A stretch of 64,000 nucleotides of DNA from Geosiphon pyriformis uo1 (Eukaryota > Fungi > Glomeromycota), in assembly GCA_016748015.1 (NCBI GenBank), contig JAAOMT010000319.1, positions 19,778 through 83,777 of the forward strand, in the 5' to 3' direction. The notes under the pieces are model-generated. The model worked only from the letters and a program-made list of their open reading frames with translations, made no database searches and was not told the DNA's origin. The translations under genes and the position numbers were made by a program. How positions within the stretch are numbered: position 1 is the stretch's first letter; each line of letters opens with the position of its first letter. Below, one piece after another: positions 7,200 to 51,965 of this stretch.

Positions 7200-10100
7200 T
7201 AAAAAAATTTTTGTTATTTTATCCACAGCATATTTAATAAGAGATAATATATGATAAAAAAACTTTTGTTAATTTCGAAATTGTGATAAAATATTAATTG
7301 TATTTCTAAAATTATTTCATTCTTTAATAAAACCTGTTTTTTGTTTTTTTTAACTATGAAGTTTTGCTAATATTTGCTAAATTTTAATTAATTAAAATAT
7401 AAAATTTCAAAGTATTTTAATAATGTTTCAACTTTAACAACAATAATAAATATATTTTTTTATAATTATTATTTTTCAACTCATAAATTTTATTGTTTTA
7501 TATTTTTAATAAATTATTTACATAAATATAAAAATTTGATAAAATAACTACGTATTTTTAATATATTTATAATACCTAACCAATTTTTAGTAACATTTTA
7601 TTAAAATAAAAAACAGCAGTAGTTTTAATAATGGTATAATTAAAAGTAATAATAATTAACCAAAAATTATAATAATAGTATAATTACAAAATAGTAAAAG
7701 AAAATTTAATAAAATGTATTTATAATAATTATTATAAAACAAATATACCAAAATATTTCGGAACTATAGAAACTCAAGGTTCCAACAATTTTAACTGGTA
7801 TTACTATAAAAAATTTAGATATTATGTAGAGAGTATCCAATCTATTAACACAATTAATATTTATTTATTAAAAAATAATTTATAATAAACCCAACCCAAA
7901 TTAATTTAATAATTAATATTCAAAGACCAAATAATTAAGATGATAGTATTCAAAATAAAAAAATTCTGGTCAACAAATATACTAATAGTCCGAGCTTTTA
8001 ACTATTTAAAATATCCATAATAAAAAACAGTCATGAAATGGAGACATTCCTATTGTCAAATTATATATATTAAGATAAAACTATCAATATCATCAGCATT
8101 TTTAATTAAATCAAATTAAAACTAATAATAATAATAATCCAAATTGCCATTTTTCTATACATTATTAGACGGATATATAGATTGAATACTTAATTATTTT
8201 ATCAACTTTATTGCTGCTTGAAAAGTCGTAATAAGATTCAAAAAATATAAAACAATATGTATTATAGTAATTTATTTTATTGCTTAGAATTTTTTTTTAA
8301 CATAATTAATATTTATTGCAATCATAAAAGATAAAAGATAAGTATAGATAAAATGTAAATATGTTATTATAAGAATTTTGATAAAATAAAAATTTTATTT
8401 TGTAATTACATTATTTTTTTAGTTAATCTTATTCCAGTAATTCTGTTCAACTTGGATGTAAATACAGTTCAGATAATTTATATGATTTTTAATAAGTAAA
8501 AGTCTTCAAAATTTTCTAATAGTATTAAAAATTTCTTGATTCCAATAATTTTTCTTTAGCTATTTTTTGTACAGTATTATAATTAATATTCAAAGCAAAA
8601 ACTTTTTGCCATCAATGGTAAATTTTTTTAAAAACTTAATATTTTTCAAATAAGCTCAATATTAATATTTTTGATTTTAATTGTTTTGGTATTTTTTTAT
8701 ATTTTTTGTTTGTAAAAGAAAAAAAGTTGTTGGTTTAATCAATTTAATATATTTTGATTTAGTACACTTATTTTTGTTTTTATTTACTACTTTTGTTATT
8801 ATTTACAGAATTTTTATTGTTTAATTAATGTTTGTTTTTAATTTAATTTACTTTTTAAATAAAGTAAATATTCTAAAAAAATATTAAATTAATATTAAAA
8901 TATTTTATTTAATTGTGATATTAATGTTAAAAATATATAGAGTAAAAATAATTTAATAAAATTGAAAATAACAATTATATTATTTAATAATAATAGCTTT
9001 ATTATCTAAATAGTAAATTTATAATAATATATAAAACATTTGAAATGTTATTAATACAAACCAAACATATATTAGTGTTCTCTTTTTCAAACTATAATAA
9101 ATACACAAAATATTATAATTACTATTGAAAATATCAAATGTGAATTAAAATACATTAAAACTAAACATAAAAAATGTGTAAAACAGTTAAAAAAGAGAGA
9201 TAGCTTGAGTAAATTAAAAATAAAAATTAAAAAAAGAATTGGTAAATAAAAGAAAAAAAACTAAAAGAAAAAATACAGGATTTAAATACAAAATTTAAAA
9301 GATAAATTGATAGAAATATATAAGACAGATAGTTATATTATAATTTACAGTCTGGTAAGAAAAAAATTGGAAATATAAAAATAATTACTATGGCTTAACT
9401 AATGTACCAAATTACATAAAACAACTTTTATTAGAAAGTCAAATACCATATAATTTTATTAAAAAAAATTAATAGGAAATTCTTTCACCATTTGTCTCAA
9501 TTATCATTTCACAACGCTGCCTGATTGATCCTACTAAACCAATTAAGGTAGATTCAGGAATATCTTGCCACTCTTCCCCTATAAATCTCTCTAATTCATT
9601 ACGATTTTGAGGCATTCTTTTTTCTACATTCTTTTTAACAATAGCCCAAAGGTTTTCTATTGGGTTTAAGTCGGGACTATTAGATGGCCACCCCAACAAA
9701 TCAATTGTATTCTCAGCAATAAATCTTTGGCAAGCTTGCTAGTATGCTTGGGGTCATTATCTTATTGGAAATGCCAATATCCCCCAGCATTGCTCTAATT
9801 TCAAGTAAGTGGTTACGAAGAATATCTATATAAAATTGAGCATTCATTATTTGAACAAAACAAAATAAACTAGTCTTTCCTTTTTCGTAGAAACCCCCCC
9901 CTCCCCACGCGAGAATTTTTGTTCGATCTTTAGGCATAGAACGAATTGGTCGAGTACCTTTATGCCAACGTTTTACCGTGTTTTGAAAAAGTTGAAAAGA
10001 CGTTTCGTCAGTAAAAACTGTTCTTTTCCAATCGTCGTTCAGGTGTTTTTTGGCCCATTCTACACGTTTTCGCTTATGCTCTTCGGTCAGCATTGGAGTT

Positions 10101-11900
10101 GCTCTAGGAAGACTTTTTTTATAATTAAGGTTGGATAAATGGTTTTGAATAGTAACATGAGAAACATTTATTCCCTTCTTAGCCAACTTTATTGCTAAAT
10201 ATCTAGACGAAACTGAGGAATCTCTACAATTAATCTGCCCTAATACTTTCGAAGAATTTCCCATAATCTTTCTTGGCCGACCATTACCACTCGCATGCTT
10301 TATTGTTTGAGTTTTTCGAGGATATTATAGATTGTAGAAAGGGGTATATTCGTTTTATTCTGTATTTCTTTCGCCTTTCGTATTCCTTGCTTCCAAAAAT
10401 GTAATACGACTTGCCGTTGCGTTTCTTGCTTTGAAGTCGGCATTTAAAAGACAAGTTTTAAAAAAAACTATTAGTTAATACGCGAGAAAATGTTTTTAGA
10501 GCTCAGCCACTTATCTAATATTCTGTTTCCATTTTTACCCTCACAAAACTTACAAAAATAGTTAAACCAAATGCAATCTTAGTAGATTCATATTTTTCCA
10601 ATTTTTTTTTTTACCAGACTGTAGATATCAAAATAACAAAGTATATAAATTATTATTTGAAGTAATATTTCTGTTTTTTACTTGATTATTAAAAACATAA
10701 CAAAATTTATACATGAACAAAATAAAAACCATACAACTTAAAATAATAAAAATAGTAATAACTTTATAATATAGAGTATTATTATGGTTCAAAAAATTAG
10801 TAAAAATTATAAATAGTAAAAATTATTTAATTATAATATAACACAGTAATAATCTTAGAAAGATAATAATTTATATAACAGTAATTATCAAATAATGATA
10901 ACAACAAGCACTATTTTGTAATAACAGCAAACATCATAATATAATAATAGCAAATATTATTTAAAAATATCAAAAATAGAGTATTACAATATATTATTTT
11001 GTACAACTACAAACATGTATATATATAATAATTTTAATATTGAAAAAAATATTTTCCATTTTTTACTTTTTAATAACATCTAAATAAATTTTTAATTAAT
11101 TAAAAGAAATAACAATATAATTTTGAAAACTAAATTATTGTGCAAATCTATTAAAAAACTCACTTGCATTTATTTATTGAAAAAATAATTTCTAATCAAG
11201 ATTATTCATTTTTTTTTATTAATTAATTAAAAGCTTTATTATTTAGAATTAAAAAAAAAACACTCAAAACAATAACATTCTGTGTTTTTAGATTAAAAAA
11301 AACACTTTAGACAATTGGAAGAAAATATATTTTAACCATTTCTTTACAAGACAAAATATGATCTTATTAATTTAATTTGTACTATATATGTTATAATACA
11401 TTTTTAAGTTAATAATTTTCTAAAGTTGTTATTTAATGAGACAAAATTTAGAGTTTTTAAAAAGAATATAATCAAGATAATGTATAAAAAAATTTTTATT
11501 ACAAAATAGATAATAAAAATTATAATAGTTTTAAAAAAGCAATTGTTTAAATTATTAATTAGATAAAAATAATAAATAGATTAAAGATATTATGGAAATA
11601 ATATGAAGTTAAATAATAAATAATGAATTATAACTAAATTAATAACTTATTGATTAAGCAAATAAACCAATAGGTTAATTGGCTAAAACATAATTTTATT
11701 TTTTATACCTCTAAAATCTTTGTTTTTGATAATTAAAAACAATTTCCAATTGAATTATAACTTTGAAAAAAATTAAAATTAAATAATTATATTATTCATA
11801 ATAGTTTTTCAAAAATATGAAGTAGCATATAATTCAGTTATTTAATTTATTGTTTAAAAAACTCTTAAAATAATTTACATTCATTGAAAATTATATGTCC
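7200..11900. repeat. Strongly AT-eroded tract, probably an old transposon relic, interrupted by a younger Tc1 element
   Basis: Very low GC, almost no CpG, no ORFs in the track other than the Tc1 fragments; remaining C/G mostly in AC/GT. Family not recognisable. Confidence 0.5.
9348..10621 (-). mobile_element. Full-length (1274 bp) but inactivated Tc1-family DNA transposon
   Basis: TIRs CAGTCTGGTAA(G/A)AAAAAAATTGGAAA at both ends, flanked by TA (9346-47, 10622-23). Transposase from ATG 10443 (MPTSKQETQRQVVLHFW...) to 9469 with FTDETSF, FQ*DNDPKH and SPDLNPIENLW; frameshifts and a CAA>TAA stop. Confidence 0.93.
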
Positions 11901-42493: not shown

Positions 42494-43300
42494 ATGGAAA
42501 AAATACTTGCGAGACGATGGTCAGCGACACTATCGAGATTCATATAACGAAAATGAGGATATTTTTTCCGGGTTATCACATGACATAATGTTAAAAATCT
42601 TATGCTTGTTGAATGAGCGAGATATTTTTTCTGTTGCTCTAGTAATGTCTCATAAAATTTTGTTTTGTATATCTCAAAGGAAAATTGTAAATAATTTATG
42701 TATTTAACCAAAAAATTTTGCTATTAATCAGGTTAACAAAAACTAGTTTTCGCATACCAAAGATAATTAATAGTGGGACATAATTTTTATGTTACGTTTT
42801 GGAGATGAAGAGAATGGAAAGGGACAAAGCTTTAAATCTAGTGATGATGAAGAGCAGGAGGAACAGGAAGATGATGAAGATGAAGAGGAGGAGGAACAGG
42901 GACAGGAAGATGTACGAAATAGACCTGAAAAAGATCCAAAAGAAGATAGATGAGGAAAAAACAGAAATTGATTGGCGTAAATTATACAAAAAATTAGGTA
43001 AGAGGTGGTAATTTTTTTGTCTCCTCAATTTATATAATCAAAGGAATAAAGTTGGAATAATATTAACATGGATCGAATTACTCCTTTTTAGCGGGAAACC
43101 TAATATCCTACGTTGCAAAAGAAAGACAGATTATTTGGATTGAAAGCAGTGCTTATTGGGTAATTGAAAATGATAAAGAGAGGTGATTATCTTCATTTAT
43201 TTCTCTCCCAAATTTTGATTAAAAGTTAATAACTTTTAATTTTAATAAAAGTAAATTTGGAAAAATTGCGCGATTCAACCATGTTTGGTGATTTAATTAG
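42494..43300 (+). pseudogene. F-box protein with acidic insert and truncated PP2-like C-terminal domain
   Basis: FSGLSHDIMLKILCLLNERDIFSVAL|VNKN*FSHTKDN**WDIIF (F-box), D/E-rich stretch, IDWRKLYKKL, then AKERQIIWIESSAYWVIENDKE|SKFGKIARFNHVW*F; breaks off at ~43300. Confidence 0.7.
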
Positions 43301-44044
43301 AACTCACTTATTAGGGATTTTCTTAGCAGTAGACTATAAACCTTTGATTATTTTTTATAATTAATAATAGAGAAGGTATTTATTAAAAAAATAATTGATA
43401 ATGTCCAAGACCAAACCACTTGGAAAGCTTGCTTGAAAAAAACTTGTTTGCTAGATTTTTCAGGTTAAAAAAAGGTTCTTGTGGTTATTTAATGAGATAG
43501 TTTTGCTCTCTTTTCTCTTAACCGTTTTAGTTCCAAGTAGATTTTTTAAGTTATCCCCCCTCTTTATGACAAAAGATTTTCCAGCCATCCCGATTACTCT
43601 CTTTTTCATTAGTTCAGTAAGAAACTCTGTTTAGTCTACTTCACCCATTACTGGCTGCGAATAAACCTCTTATGGCATTTATCACATTTTTGCTTTTGAT
43701 CCATGTCTAGCTGTTAATTCTTATTGTCCTATTAATAGCATCGAAGTAGAGTAATTTAAATTGATTTTTCCTAATCGTCAAGACATTAAATTTATCCAAA
43801 AAAGAAAGCAGACAAAAAAACTCTTAATGGTATTCATAGAACGCTCTTGTATGATGCGTCATGAGATGAAAGGATGTATAATAAAAAGTAGCATTATCCT
43901 ACAAAAAAGATGCCAAAGTTATTATGAACAGATAAGTGCTTGAAAAAAAGAAAGTCAAATAAAGGAATGAGAGGTCATTTTTAAAGAGATTATTGAGTAT
44001 CTTTGGATGAATAGAAAACAAACTTATAATTACTTACCTATTAT

Positions 44045-44314
44045 TCACTTCTTTCCTTTTCTTTTGGTGCCATCTGGCAAGACATTATGATAAGCTCCAT
44101 AACGTCCACTAGGGTATTCGACATCCCAGTGGGGGCCACTATGAGAATTAGGATTCCCTGGGTCACGTCCTGTCGGAACCCAAACACTCCCGTCTTTGTG
44201 GGGGTATCCTTTTTTGTGACTATTAGGAGCCTTCTTCAATTTACCATCCCAATTCCTAGGCGGTTCAAAGCCGTGTTCTTTGCCTGGCATGCCTGGCTCT
44301 TTTATCTTTAGCAT
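44045..44314 (-). CDS. Bacterial polymorphic-toxin-like domain protein (Ntox37-like, predicted RNase), 89 aa
   Basis: Intact ORF with PGxP..GF.PP.NWDGK....N...GYP.KDGSVWVPTG....HSGPHWDV......Y.NVLPDG..R, the motif string I recall for Bacterial toxin 37 (PF15535). GC-richer than its flanks; no intron within the ORF. Confidence 0.8.
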   Translation of the reverse strand: MLKIKEPGMPGKEHGFEPPRNWDGKLKKAPNSHKKGYPHKDGSVWVPTGRDPGNPNSHSGPHWDVEYPSGRYGAYHNVLPDGTKRKGKK

Positions 44315-44630
44315 ATTGTTGGGTGTAGGTTACGATGAATTATACCAGCAGAGTGAATTTGATCAAAGACCAATATATATATTTCTAATTTATTAAGAAC
44401 AACTCGTAGAATGAAAATTTGTTGATAAATATTTCTTTATGTCACCATAATCGGTAAATTTCATCACAATTCAAACATTTAGATGAAAATAATAGGAAAT
44501 TGATTACCTCTTTAAACTATTCTACAATGATATCTATAAATTTTATTGCTACTTTTTTCTTTTATATTCCATTGAATCATGATGCTTTTTATTAGTTGGA
44601 TTAATTAATCCATTAATATAGGTTGCTTAA
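44315..44630 (-). pseudogene. TKL kinase relic (N-lobe to catalytic loop) running directly into the toxin ORF
   Basis: ATYINGLI...MEYKRK, VAIKFID...FKE|gtaatc, IVMKFTDYGDIKKYLSTNFHST, QIHSAGIIHRNLHP ending next to the toxin ATG. Confidence 0.85.
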
Positions 44631-44869
44631 TCTTATTTCTCATGTATTAGCCTTAAACAGGTTTAACTATGATTAAGGTAATTGCCTATTTTTTAAATCT
44701 AAAATTTAGCTTTCGTCTAAAGCATAAAAAGTAACGTGCTACCAAAATTCTTTAAAAAAAAAGAATCTCTGCTAACCAAAGATAATTTATTAATATTAAA
44801 TAGTTTTTTTTTAAAAAAAAGGATAATGTTAGAAAATTCAAATCAAAGATCATTGTTAATAAAGACTCG

Positions 44870-45250
44870 AGTTTTCATTAAAAGAATGAAATTGATGGAT
44901 GCGTAATCTATTTTTTATTTTTATATTCATAAAAACAATGAAAATTTTATTCGGAACAATTTTTTTAATCAAAGTTAAAAAATTTACTCTTAAATTTATT
45001 TCGAATAAAATTTTTTGTTTATTAAGGTTTTCTGCATAATATTATGTTTTAGTTTTTTATTAATTATTTTATTTTATTTTATTTCAAAAAATTTAAATTA
45101 ATAATATAAATAATTTTTTAAGATAATTAAAATTTAATTTATACACCTAATATAATGAAACATAACATCATAAATAGATTCCTTGAGAATATTTAAAAAA
45201 TATCAGCAAAATGGGTAAAGGGAGTTGGCAATATATCAATATATATATAT
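44870..45250 (+). pseudogene. Strongly eroded TKL kinase exon-1 relic
   Basis: 45120-45240 matches IIKNPIYIP...WIPWERLKNISKIGKGGFGNIY at DNA level, with W>stop changes. Confidence 0.6.
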
Positions 45251-46229
45251 TAATAGATTAATTGATTTAAGAAGTATAAAATATCATGGTTTATTTTAAT
45301 TGAGATTAATTGGGTTTTTATAAAAAGAATTTCTTAATTTTTTGTCTGCTTGAATTTGGGTTATTAAAAGTTTGGAAAGTCGCTAGCATTGAATTAAAAA
45401 TTAAATACAATTTTATTCAGGAAATATCCTGTTAATTAAAGAACAATTATAAACTAGAAATAAATAAAAGATACAATATAAACTATTTTATAAATGTATT
45501 TGGAATGATAATTTTAATTAAAATCAAATTTTCTAAATCAAATTATATTATGTTTAAACAAAATAAACCATTTTTACTTAATTTAATTATTAAAAATTGA
45601 AGATCATAATATTCCTAAGTTCAATTTTTAAATTTCATATATTTTAAGTGATTAATATCTCTTTTCTCGTATGATAATGTGCTTTACAAATAATGAGGAA
45701 AAATCTCAAAGGACCAATCAAAATTGTCTTCAGATTATGTTTAAAATGATTTAATGAAATATAATTTTTAACTATTAAATTAAAATATATTTAATTCGGA
45801 TAGAATAAACTAAATGAAATGCATTCATTTTTTATAAAAGTGTTTGCTAAAACAATATTTCAAAAAATTATTTCGAAAATTTATTCAAAGATTCCTCATG
45901 TTTTTATACTGGGCTAGCTATAAACATAGTTGCTTTCATTTGCCTTCTAATTTGTTTGCATATCCTAAACCTCTCTAATCCAATCAATTATTTTTCACGT
46001 GCGAAGAATCAAATTTCGCTTTACACCATTTAACATCTGATCAGTTCAACCTATTAAAGGTTAATTTGGTTTTCTAAATATAAAGAAATATTAAATAAAT
46101 TGAACATAATTATATTGAATTATTTCTATCAGGCAGGTAGATAAGTTCTTTGGGAAGGTATTAATAGAATAAATAGTAAATTTAAAACATTGATTAATTT
46201 TAAAAATAAAACAATCACTTAAAACTAAA

Positions 46230-47350
46230 TAAACAAACCTTTTGAAGATTCATTCATTTGCATAGTTAAAAGTCGGCTTGAATACATTGCCTTTATATTC
46301 ATTATTGTTGAAAATGTTTTTATGTCGTCACATTCCACTGTTGCTTTGACACAATTTTCTGATTCCTTAAACAGTAACCTCTAATTAGACCCCTCATAAT
46401 ACAAGTTGTGCAGGTTTTCCAATGTCAAATTAACTCCTTTAGCACTAGGACGATTCAATGGATTGACGTCCCAACACTTTTCAATGAGTTCAGCGATACA
46501 ATATGGAATAAGGGGAGAGATAATTTCAGGTCTTATACCATCTAGAATATTCACTATGAGAATAATATTATGAGTAAGATTATAAAAGGGAATCTTTAAT
46601 TTATTCAACCCAACTTGTAGAATGAAAATTTAGTTGGTAACTATTTTAGCAGGTCTCCACCTGAGGCAAAGTTCATCCCGATTCCATGCTCGAGTGTTTC
46701 AGGGTTTGGTGTAATTCCTATTAGATAAGATATATATGCTGACATGTACCCATTCTAAATGAACATAGTTCTCTCAATATTTAACTGTTAATTAAATTAA
46801 TTAATTATTTAATATCCTAATAAGAATTGAACGAACGTTCAGATGAATATAAATAATAAGTATAAAAATAATTTGATTACCTCTTTGAATACTTTTTCAT
46901 CATTCTGTAAAGATGTCTTCACAAATTTTATTGCTACTTCCTTGCCGTCTATATATTTAATTCTTTTATACTCTATTGCACCATAATGTTTTATACTAAT
47001 TGAATCAATCCTTCCATCAATCCATGTTGCTTTATAAATTGCGCCAAACCCTCCTTCACCAATTTTTTTTGATATTCTTTAAACGATCCCATGGAATCCA
47101 ATTATAATAATTGACTCTACCATACTGATCTTTTTTTATCAATAGGTGGAATATAAATTGGATTCTTAATAATTTTATCAACTAATTTATTTCCGCTTGA
47201 ACAGTCCTTGTAAAATTTTCAAAAAAATATGAATTGGCATGCTCTACACTTATTACTTAACTCAGTATTCCTAATTCTTTTTTGACATATTTCACACTCG
47301 TTGCAATCATGAGTTTCTGGACGAGTTCTTTATTTAAAAGATTTTTTTCA
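46230..47350 (-). pseudogene. TKL kinase pseudogene with central deletion
   Basis: TRPETHDCNECEICQK...CRACQF, WIPWDRLK, IGEGGFGAIYKATWIDG, VAIKF, FKE|, GITPNPETLEHG, then a jump to PFYNLTHN...RPEII...CWDVNPLNRPSAK and AMYSSRLLTMQM. Catalytic loop and DFG region deleted. Confidence 0.88.
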
Positions 47351-47849
47351 TGATGCAGATAAAATCAGAGTAATTATTATGAGAATGTCAATTTATTAAT
47401 GAGTTTTGAAAAGAAGGGTTTCTTTTTCAAAGCTTTTATATGTAACAATATTTCAAGGCTGAATTTTTAAACACGTATTAGAATCTAACTAAAAAATGAT
47501 TAATATAACCGTTTAATCATTAATCTCGTGAAAATTCTATTATTAAAGATTAAACTTGAATAAAAAGATTTTCCATTTCAGCAACAATATATAAAAAATC
47601 AGGCGTTACTTTTGGTGCCTACTATACATAATCACTCCAAACATTTTTTTCCACTGTAAGCTGAGGTCAATAAGCAATATTACTTGCTATCTAACAAATA
47701 TAATGACAATTTGCTCAAAAATGTTTCCATAAAAGGCAAACTGCATTACGATCCCATACGTGACACCGATTATTATCAAGATATAGTGTATGGGCCCAAC
47801 CTAGATTCTTCAGTATTTAACTATGAAAAGTGAAATATTTAACGAAAAT

Positions 47850-48232
47850 AATTTGATTACCTTTTTAGAGAGATTATCACTGTTTCCAAAGATACATTTA
47901 TAAATTTTATTGCTAGTTTTTTCCCCTTCTTTTATATTTCATCTAATCATGATACTTTATATAACCTTTATCAATTAGTATGGTTTTATAAATTGTACCA
48001 AACCTTTCCTCACCAATTTTGTTGATGTTTGAAAAACTCTCCCATTAGCATTTATTCATAATAATTAACTCTCCCATATTTATATTGCCGCTTTGTTAAG
48101 TTTTTCAAAAAATAAAGAGTGGCATACATTGTACCCATTGTGTTGATTATTTTAAATGCTCTATTGAGACTTTTCACACTCTGTGCAATTATAAACTGCT
48201 GAACGGATTCTTTTAATTTCAAAGTTTTCCAT
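47850..48232 (-). pseudogene. TKL kinase exon-1 relic
   Basis: MENFEIKRIRSAVYNCTECEK...QCMPLFIF, WESFSNINKIGEERFGTIYK, LAIKFI...SLK|gtaatc, with stops. Confidence 0.8.
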
Positions 48233-50292: not shown

Positions 50293-51965
50293 ATGGAGAA
50301 GCTTCAAATTAAAAAAAACCGCCCAAAAGATCATAATTGCAAAAAGTGTTCTTTGTGTCAAGAGAGCATCAAAAATAAAACATACAATGATTGCAAGGCA
50401 TGTCAATTCTTATTCTTTCGACGACTTTATAAAGAATTTTCAAGTGGCAACAAAACAGTCGACGAAATAATTAAGAATCCAATTTATATACCAGGAAGGA
50501 ACAACAATCAAAGAGATAACTTTTACCGTATTGAATGGATTCCATGGGATCGTTTGAGAAATGTTTCAAAGATTGGTCAAGGAGGATTTGGTAATATTTA
50601 TAAAGCAACGTGGGTAGGCAGCTGGATTAATTTTATAAATGTGCATAATGGTAAAATGGAATATGAAAGAAAGGGACCGAAAGAAGTTGCAATAAAATTT
50701 ATGAGCTCACCTTTGCAAAATAATTTGGAACTCTTTAAAGAGGTAATTAAAATATTGGTCTACATCCAAACCTTTCTGATTCACGTATCTTATTCATAAT
50801 ACTTATTAATCTAATTTTTCCCTTACTGATAGATAAATATTCAAAGAGCTATGTTAATTAGTACTAGATACATATCATTCATAACTGAAATATACGGCAT
50901 CACACAAAATCCTCAAACTCTCGATTTTGGGTTCGTGATGGAACTTGCCGAACACGGGGATATGAGAAAATATTTATTATCCAATTTTCACTCTACTTTT
51001 TGGGATAATAAATTAAATTTAGCCTGGAATATTGCCGAAGGCCTTAATCTAATTCACTCTGCTGGTATGATTCATTGTGACTTACACTCAGGCAACATTC
51101 TACAATTAAGCAATGAAAGGGTGAAAATTGGAGACCTTGGATTGAGTAAACCTGCGAATAGGGAAGCAGCAGATGAAGAAATATTTGGAGTGATTCCATA
51201 TATTCCACCAGAAGTTTTAAAAGGGGAAAAGTTCACAACAGCTGGTGATATATATAGCTTAGGAATGCTATTATGGGAATTAGCAACAGGAAAGCCTCCA
51301 TTTTATGATCGTCCTCATAACGATTCTCTTGTAATAGACATTTTAAATGGTAAAAGACCTAAAATCACCGCCCCATTTATTCCACCTTGCATCGCTGAAA
51401 TAATTGAACAATGTTGGGAAGCAAATCCATCGAATCGTCCTACGGCTAATGAAGTTTTGAAGAAATTAGTTGAACTTCTCAGAGTGCGAAATTATTCATC
51501 TCCAACAAAGAGTCTTGAGAGTTTACAATTTTTGAAATCAGATAAACTCATTAAAGAAAGTGTTGAATATGTTGCATGTGACGAGACGCCAAAACGGTCA
51601 AGCAAATTTTCAAAATTTATTAAATTCCTAAAAAAACTTATGAAATGCAGTAAGAAAAAAAATTCCTCCAAAAAATCCGCTAAAAAATCTCCAATAAATA
51701 TTCATCAAAGAGCAGTTTATACGAGTCGTTCCTTAACATTACAAATGACTGATGTTTCAAAAGGTTCGTTTTTCAGTTAATGTGATTTAATTAAATTAAT
51801 TTTTTAAACTTTAAATTTTTTTATAATTCTAGGTTCAACAGAATTTGTCTATTTACCTAAAGGTAAGCAAAAAAAAAGGATGTCAAGAAAATATATACTC
51901 TATCTACTATTTTTAACGTTTCTTTCTGTTCACTATTCTTAGAAACCCCAAATGAATCGATTTGA
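50293..51965 (+). CDS. Intact TKL Ser/Thr kinase with N-terminal Cys/His motif; exons 50293-50742, 50833-51763, 51833-51862, 51943-51965
   Basis: GQGGFGNIYKA, VAIK, FKE|INIQ, HCDLHSGNIL, DLGLS, YIPPE, DIYSLG, RPTANE. All junctions in frame; Lys/Ser-rich C-terminal insert. Confidence 0.9.

Follow-up and report, generated by a model that had tools for sequence, protein, structure and literature searches.

A bacterial Ntox37 toxin domain joined to kinase debris in Geosiphon pyriformis: probable scar of a DNA transfer from endosymbiont to nucleus

A contig of the fungus Geosiphon pyriformis (JAAOMT010000319.1), of which we analyzed a stretch of 64,000 nucleotides (the window), carries an intact open reading frame for a bacterial Ntox37 toxin domain that begins exactly where the sequence of a TKL kinase breaks off. 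In our reading, this junction is probably the left-hand scar of a DNA transfer from an endosymbiont to the fungal nucleus. The nearest relatives of the toxin are found in Mollicutes-related endobacteria (MRE), a second gene lies beside it in the order of the donor, and both are bounded on the same contig by host sequence, with kinase debris and host repeats as the flanks. What looks like a kinase-toxin "chimera" would thus be the edge of a foreign insert and not a new protein architecture. The window itself is eukaryotic: it is sparse, with seven ORFs of at least 170 aa in 64 kb, and contains kinases with introns as well as the remnant of a Tc1-type transposase. The features discussed below are the following.

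42535-47479: duplicated block, with its copy on a second contig (C520) at 60720-68564, reaching to the end of that contig.
43710-43924, plus strand: remains of a DUF8220 gene that faces the toxin in convergent orientation, as it does in MRE genomes.
43862-43864, plus strand: TGA at the site of Trp94 of the DUF8220 protein of the endosymbiont GvMRE, which spells this Trp TGA (genetic code 4).
44045-44314, minus strand: Ntox37 ORF, 89 codons, intact; a complete toxin domain without N-terminal trafficking module.
44290-44288, minus strand: second in-frame ATG of the toxin ORF, the start of the public 81-aa gene call.
44302-44322, minus strand: junction interval; kinase-like up to 44309 (CTA), toxin-like in AAG ATA AAA GAG at 44308-44297.
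44312-44314, minus strand: ATG start codon of the toxin, aligned with the Ile codon (ATC/ATA/ATT) of the kinase motif GNIL and also present in the C520 copy.
44323-44631, minus strand: TKL kinase pseudogene fragment B, from just past the Gly-rich loop to the catalytic loop, in three frames and with stops.
44488-44507, minus strand: kinase intron stub (GTAATCAATTTCC...), matching the 5' intron end of intact paralogs.
45155-45291, plus strand: scrap of kinase exon 1 in inverted orientation, lying upstream of fragment B.
46228-47329, minus strand: kinase pseudogene A, broken into pieces in three frames and lacking exon-2 residues 47-147.

In a profile search PF15535 matched the ORF at 44045-44314 with an E-value of 6.4e-14 (52.8 bits, cut-off 27.8), ORF residues 5-82 covering positions 2-78 of the 78 in the profile, and the genome-wide profile scan gave 52 bits. 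Every invariant or near-invariant residue of the family is kept, including the GPHWDV motif with H62-W-D64. From stop to stop the frame has 94 codons, and its upstream limit lies 6 codons before the ATG. Ntox37 has been described as an all-beta domain with a conserved E, [KR] and Hx[DH], with no activity given (PMC3482391). The predicted structure of the domain in the window has five strands (pLDDT 83.4). Neither Foldseek with this model (E <= 0.001) nor a sequence search returned a match in the PDB. The best Z in VIA-align was 3.7, and weak scores were obtained for two rRNases, namely the colicin E3 rRNase domain (Z 3.5, 71 residues aligned) and CdiA-CT of E. cloacae (Z 3.0), a resemblance of the modeled fold that we take as a lead only.

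An exhaustive profile-free search yielded 376 Ntox37 relatives. Among the matches listed, nearly all have the domain at the C-terminus. The ORF in the window does not hold this usual position at the end of a larger secreted protein, and carries neither a signal peptide nor an N-terminal module. Its three closest relatives are a protein of GvMRE, the endosymbiont of Glomus versiforme (WP_147411421, 67%), one filed under Glomus cerebriforme that lies on an MRE contig (RIA93358.1, P0004, 68%), and one from Funneliformis caledonium (64%). In a quick tree the copies from the window and from C520 pair with an SH-aLRT of 99 and are placed within the MRE/AMF group (85-89). Full-length relatives from this group begin with a module made of a hydrophobic helix, a Ser-rich stretch and WWGxGL...ELGY, for which no homolog was found anywhere in the fungal genome searched. 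The N-boundary of the domain, K/Q-[AE]-P-G-x-P-T-x-x-D-G-[FY], is present in about 150 relatives and corresponds to residues 5-16 in the window. By these alignments, the toxin ORF is the 3' end, i.e. the last third, of an MRE toxin gene.

The origin of the relatives was judged from their surroundings. The G. cerebriforme contig QKYT01000106.1 (20-kb locus L017) is bacterial, uses genetic code 4 with in-frame TGA codons, and contains ORFs which, from the motifs recognised in them, we take to be Fpg-, thymidylate kinase (Tmk)-, Ndk- and RNase III-like. As the contig is bacterial, RIA93358.1 is an MRE protein, and the whole 259-kb contig filed under G. cerebriforme probably belongs to MRE as judged from its sequence. 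The possibility that this copy is a fungal nuclear gene was rejected for the same reason, a bacterial contig with genetic code 4. The F. caledonium locus was assigned to the nucleus because it is sparse and carries Kelch-like ORFs. Its annotated protein CAG8452298.1 (CAJVPQ010000160.1, L018:10001-10588) has an "intron" that merely skips an in-frame TAG (WW to W-stop), and this nuclear copy of a full-length MRE-type toxin is a pseudogene; an open, near-identical copy is found on a soil metagenome contig (L055). Within MRE genomes the toxin gene looks foreign. In both MRE toxin genes (L031:6001-6606 and L017:10001-10573) all seven Trp are TGG and the GC content is 0.43 versus 0.29 in the surroundings, while in the neighbouring genes about 60% of the Trp codons are TGA (P ~0.002).

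The second gene of the insert, DUF8220, is dead in the window. Its remains are two pieces in different frames, 43710-43799 and 43799-43924, which correspond to GvMRE residues 17-46 and 73-114 and are interrupted by stops at 43752 (TAA), 43862 (TGA) and 43889 (TAG). The GvMRE gene likewise follows the toxin in convergent orientation and has three Trp written TGA. The TGA at 43862 lies inside an insertion that is present in the MRE-type clade and absent from other bacterial DUF8220 proteins, and the nuclear DUF8220 remnant of F. caledonium (L018 10792-10917) has TGA at two MRE Trp sites. We read the codon at 43862 as a footprint of the genetic code of the donor, a lone site of this kind being also explicable by a TGG-to-TGA change. 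The C520 copy of the gene has the same TAA stop, loss of 26 codons and change of frame. At the DNA level the similarity to MRE stops near 43710, and at the protein level a few further codons can be aligned to about 43690; from these limits (~43.69-44.31 kb) the insert measures about 0.6 kb.

A putative cognate gene thus adjoins the toxin, as in a toxin-immunity module. In 17 unrelated bacterial and metagenome loci (L046, L043, L037, L034, L049, L060, L063, L069, L074, L077, L081, L085, L091-L093, L096 and L101) DUF8220 comes directly after Ntox37, co-directional and within a few bases. The two genes are convergent in GvMRE, the IMG contigs, L054-56, L073, F. caledonium, the window and C520. 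Since steady adjacency after the toxin is the usual signature of immunity genes, DUF8220 is likely the immunity partner of Ntox37. When searched against Pfam, the bacterial DUF8220 homologs matched neither Imm32 nor DUF8220; the 2012 survey had paired Ntox37 with Imm32 (PMC3482391).

On the other side of the junction, fragment B is 76-78% identical in DNA to dozens of nuclear TKL paralogs. Its kinase homology begins near 44631, so that it is truncated at the 5' side and cut at both ends. About 140 bp are missing, from the middle of the intron through the beginning of exon 2 as far as the IVMKF codons, and a 10-bp deletion shifts the frame just before IHSAG. The first ~20 bases of the intron of the kinase family (GTAATCAATTT...) are retained, evidence that the fragment derives from genomic DNA of the fungus. 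When the intact paralog at 50293-51780 served as tblastn query, its two exons kept separate, only short pieces matched. No kinase C-lobe or DFG was detected downstream of the insert, even at E 50, and neither the exon with the Cys motif nor a collinear 5' part of exon 1 was found in line upstream of fragment B. A functional TKL kinase has a continuous frame through N-lobe, catalytic loop, DFG and C-lobe, and fragment B does not. It is, as its lesions indicate, a non-coding remnant of about 300 bp, a dead fragment rather than an N-lobe gene. The inverted scrap of exon 1 marks the neighbourhood as a jumble of kinase debris and not a single gene. Pseudogene A is, by the pieces it contains, separate from fragment B and not its lost half. 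A further weak exon-1 scrap was observed at 47922-48232, and the stretch with pseudogene A and scraps is a "kinase graveyard" that has been block-copied to C520.

The join was then read base by base. The minus-strand letters quoted in an earlier note on this DNA, written from the sequence alone, are correct, as is its placing of the toxin Met at the Ile of GNIL: the ATG occupies, in register, the Ile position of the kinase motif HRDLHxGNIL. In this register paralogs read CAC TCG/CCG GGC AAC ATC CTA CAA (H S/P G N I L Q), and the window reads CAC CC- AAC AAT ATG CTA AAG. Between AAC AAT ATG CTA (44320-44309) and the paralog GGC AAC ATC CTA, 7-9 of 12 positions match, a score reached by 0.1-4% of other offsets in the same loci. 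In the 6 bases after 44309 the match to kinase paralogs drops to chance level. Homology to toxin-gene DNA starts at 44309 with the G. cerebriforme-associated copy, or at 44302 with the F. caledonium copy and an IMG contig. Mapped in this way from both sides, the breakpoint lies within ~44302-44309. The kinase codons upstream of the ATG are 1 base shorter than in the paralogs, the difference falling at 44321-44322, and are hence in another frame, which ends at a TAA overlapping the ATG. The N-I-L codons share the reading frame of the toxin. As this is a single junction from a single event, neither its position at the catalytic loop nor the in-frame join can be distinguished from chance; the prior for an in-frame join alone is one in three. 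The ATG could also come from the toxin side via a one-codon gap, as the linker of the toxin family (LKNII or LKNYV) then faintly resembles NNML. The comparison involves only four residues (MLKI), and ungapped toxin DNA upstream of the AAA shows chance-level similarity.

From the alignments we infer the following course of events, which includes end joining as the mechanism. About 0.6 kb of DNA from an MRE living in the cytoplasm, with the last third of the toxin gene (Ntox37) and the convergent DUF8220 immunity gene, would have been joined to a broken end in a copy of a TKL kinase, the break falling after the HRDLHxGNIL codons. This kinase copy would already have been debris or would have become so soon after. 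By chance the join would have kept the kinase N-I-L codons in the frame of the toxin, and once the Ile codon had mutated to ATG, the orphan domain would have had a start codon. Later the block, together with more than 5 kb of flank, would have been copied to C520, where the toxin has since decayed. Among the interpretations offered by the earlier note, a captured toxin fragment that gained its start codon from the kinase is thus borne out, with MRE as the probable source and the immunity gene brought along.

The same note had also considered an ancestral fusion of Cys motif, kinase N-lobe and toxin, the toxin taking the place of the C-lobe, and the swapping of toxin tips on the expanded kinase family. 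On present evidence no kinase-toxin fusion protein is encoded in the window. That a working fusion once existed and has since decayed agrees with the N-(I/M)-L codons being in the frame of the toxin, as after an originally in-frame join, and with the toxin part being still open. The kinase part is truncated at its 5' side, the Cys motif and the 5' part of exon 1 are missing in line upstream, and the deletions of ~140 bp and 10 bp predate the duplication. Moreover, the kinase part has lesions in both copies where the toxin was lesion-free, so that the two parts decayed unalike, and a kinase N-lobe cut at the catalytic loop is not known to have any activity.

Fusions were also sought elsewhere, and none was seen in 150 Ntox37 representatives, in about 80 loci or in the fungal genome. 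In the 150 representatives listed no kinase similarity was found beyond a weak one in P0132. This candidate (C-lobe BLAST E 8.8e-4 in a set of 151) has neither a Pfam kinase domain nor kinase motifs and was set aside as a chance match. No kinase occurs within 6-10 kb of Ntox37 in 21 genome and 54 metagenome loci, nor within this distance of the toxin in the loci of GvMRE, the G. cerebriforme MRE, F. caledonium and IMG. Together, these observations make an ancestral fusion very improbable. With no kinase beside Ntox37 elsewhere, the junction is best read as an integration scar that chanced to supply a start codon. The earlier note would have called it a chance deletion junction if other Ntox37 copies had their own conserved MLKIKE N-terminus and no fusion existed elsewhere. 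Only the latter was found; in place of MLKIKE the other copies have the conserved K[AE]PG.PT boundary and a module of their own.

The join could alternatively have been made inside an MRE, by recombination of an Ntox37 tip onto a kinase of host origin, the kinase-toxin-immunity block reaching the nucleus afterwards. Several fungus-derived kinase genes per MRE genome have been published (PMC10507103), for which reason we keep a small probability for a bacterial join. It would fit with the non-kinase sequence that bounds fragment B on both sides, and toxin cassettes of bacteria recombine at exactly this boundary (PMC3482391). The 5' end of a fungal intron retained in fragment B speaks against it and in favor of a nuclear origin of the junction. 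Fragment B furthermore lies among other nuclear kinase debris, and the contigs of GvMRE, of the G. cerebriforme-associated MRE and of MRE-like metagenomes have no kinase within 6-10 kb of the toxin. A join in the nucleus therefore remains the preferred reading.

In the whole fungal genome (128 Mb, 792 contigs) Ntox37 has only two matches, in the window and on C520. The C520 copy has the identical junction, the 10-bp deletion and the ~140-bp deletion. Since these are common to both, the junction had formed and the kinase part was dead before the duplication. By substitutions the flanks of the two blocks have diverged by 6-8%, fragment B and the toxin by about 12%. C520 has lesions of its own: 22 bp have been lost at the junction, the toxin contains a TAA, and its 3' end is gone. 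Both ATGs of the toxin are retained in both copies. The two Ntox37 copies are, from the shared lesions, one event inside a segmental duplication of at least 5 kb, and having one origin they do not form a kinase-toxin gene family. The eukaryotic analog of polymorphic-toxin tip swapping finds no support in two copies with the same junction from a single segmental duplication. Elsewhere in the window, an ORF at 9713-10264 on the minus strand has a Tc3-type transposase HTH domain (E 4.8e-14), and the 1.3-kb stretch around it (9346-10626) recurs on C520 with 92% identity.

Finally, we compared the toxin in the window with that on C520 (65024-65227) for signs of selection. The two differ at 25 of 204 bases. 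Of the 19 changed codons 10 are synonymous versus 4.1 expected (P 0.005) in a neutral simulation with the mutation spectrum of the flanks, and versus 5.6 expected (P 0.04) when only transitions are simulated. Against internal pseudogene controls, the codons of the dead DUF8220 and kinase parts (6 of 23 synonymous), the excess in the toxin has a P of 0.055-0.074. Five of the six polarisable residue changes fall on the C520 branch, and the terminal branch of the window copy has a length of 0. Over its 270 bp the toxin is free of lesions; the adjoining remnants acquired 2-3 common lesions before the duplication (Poisson ~0.08). Synonymous divergence of the toxin is 0.30 versus 0.07 in the flanks, about four times higher, and its GC3 is 0.40-0.44 versus 0.25-0.29 in host genes and 0.22-0.29 in donor genes. 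Simple constraint does not explain these two values. The codon comparisons are suggestive of, but do not prove, purifying selection on the ORF in the window. We put at about even the chance that a leaderless toxin domain of 81-89 aa is being produced, or once was, and has been maintained by selection.

Only a little below even chances stands a pure relic, for which the scar is read correctly, the ORF was never expressed, and the open frame and its ATG are a matter of luck. The decay of the sister copy on C520 (TAA stop and two deletions), the dead immunity gene and the lack of a signal peptide or N-terminal module are all as expected for a relic. The neutral chance of the frame staying open since the duplication is ~0.3-0.5, and the synonymous excess is not significant against the internal controls. 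A relic is less easily reconciled with that excess in the simulations (P 0.005-0.04), with the zero-length terminal branch of the window copy, with 270 lesion-free bases of toxin beside remnants that have 2-3 lesions (Poisson ~0.08), or with both ATGs being retained in both copies.

More speculatively, the fungus may express the leaderless Ntox37 against its own wall-less MRE in the cytoplasm, or in conflicts between nuclei or strains, which we regard as unlikely from the sequence evidence. Such an expressed toxin would have received its start codon from a kinase pseudogene, and its immunity gene would have been discarded. If true, it would be a fungal counterpart to the domesticated interbacterial toxins of animals and a gene birth from an integration scar. 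If the selection signal is real, the locus offers a testable case of a host armed with the weapon of its endosymbiont.

As a probable transfer from MRE to the nucleus of a member of the Glomeromycotina, the locus provides an example of such DNA movement at the level of single bases. The opposite direction, from fungus to MRE, has been described for this partnership (PMC10507103), and in R. irregularis a survey turned up no MRE among the donors (PMC5982333). The locus also indicates that this toxin-immunity module was inserted independently in two fungi at least, the one with the window and F. caledonium; it links Ntox37 to DUF8220, the likely immunity partner, and illustrates how an integration junction can supply a start codon to an orphan domain.

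Compared with the Ntox37 polymorphic toxins of bacteria (Zhang et al. 2012, PMC3482391), the window shows the same domain, the same cassette boundary and a following immunity gene, and stand-alone cassettes of 81-90 aa exist in bacteria too (P0064, P0083). It differs from them in having no N-terminus for secretion or trafficking and no array of alternative tips, in its dead immunity gene and in its place on a eukaryotic chromosome; no eukaryotes are listed for Ntox37 in that survey. With the expanded TKL kinase family of Glomeromycotina, fragment B shares the position of the intron and a DNA identity of 76-78%, while as a ~300-bp remnant it is, unlike the members of that family, without function. 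The dae genes of ticks and others are domesticated interbacterial toxins that are expressed, secreted and act on bacteria. Like these, the window has a bacterial antagonism domain captured by a eukaryote as an open gene; unlike them, its toxin lacks a signal peptide and the signs of selection are suggestive only. Parallels are also offered by NUMT/NUPT-like inserts and the Wolbachia-to-insect inserts, where likewise a short piece of DNA from an organelle or cytoplasmic bacterium ends up at a break in host DNA and most of it decays. As in these inserts, the gene order of the donor is kept here along with a TGA-for-Trp footprint, and what sets the window apart from both kinds is its putative donor, an MRE of Glomeromycotina.
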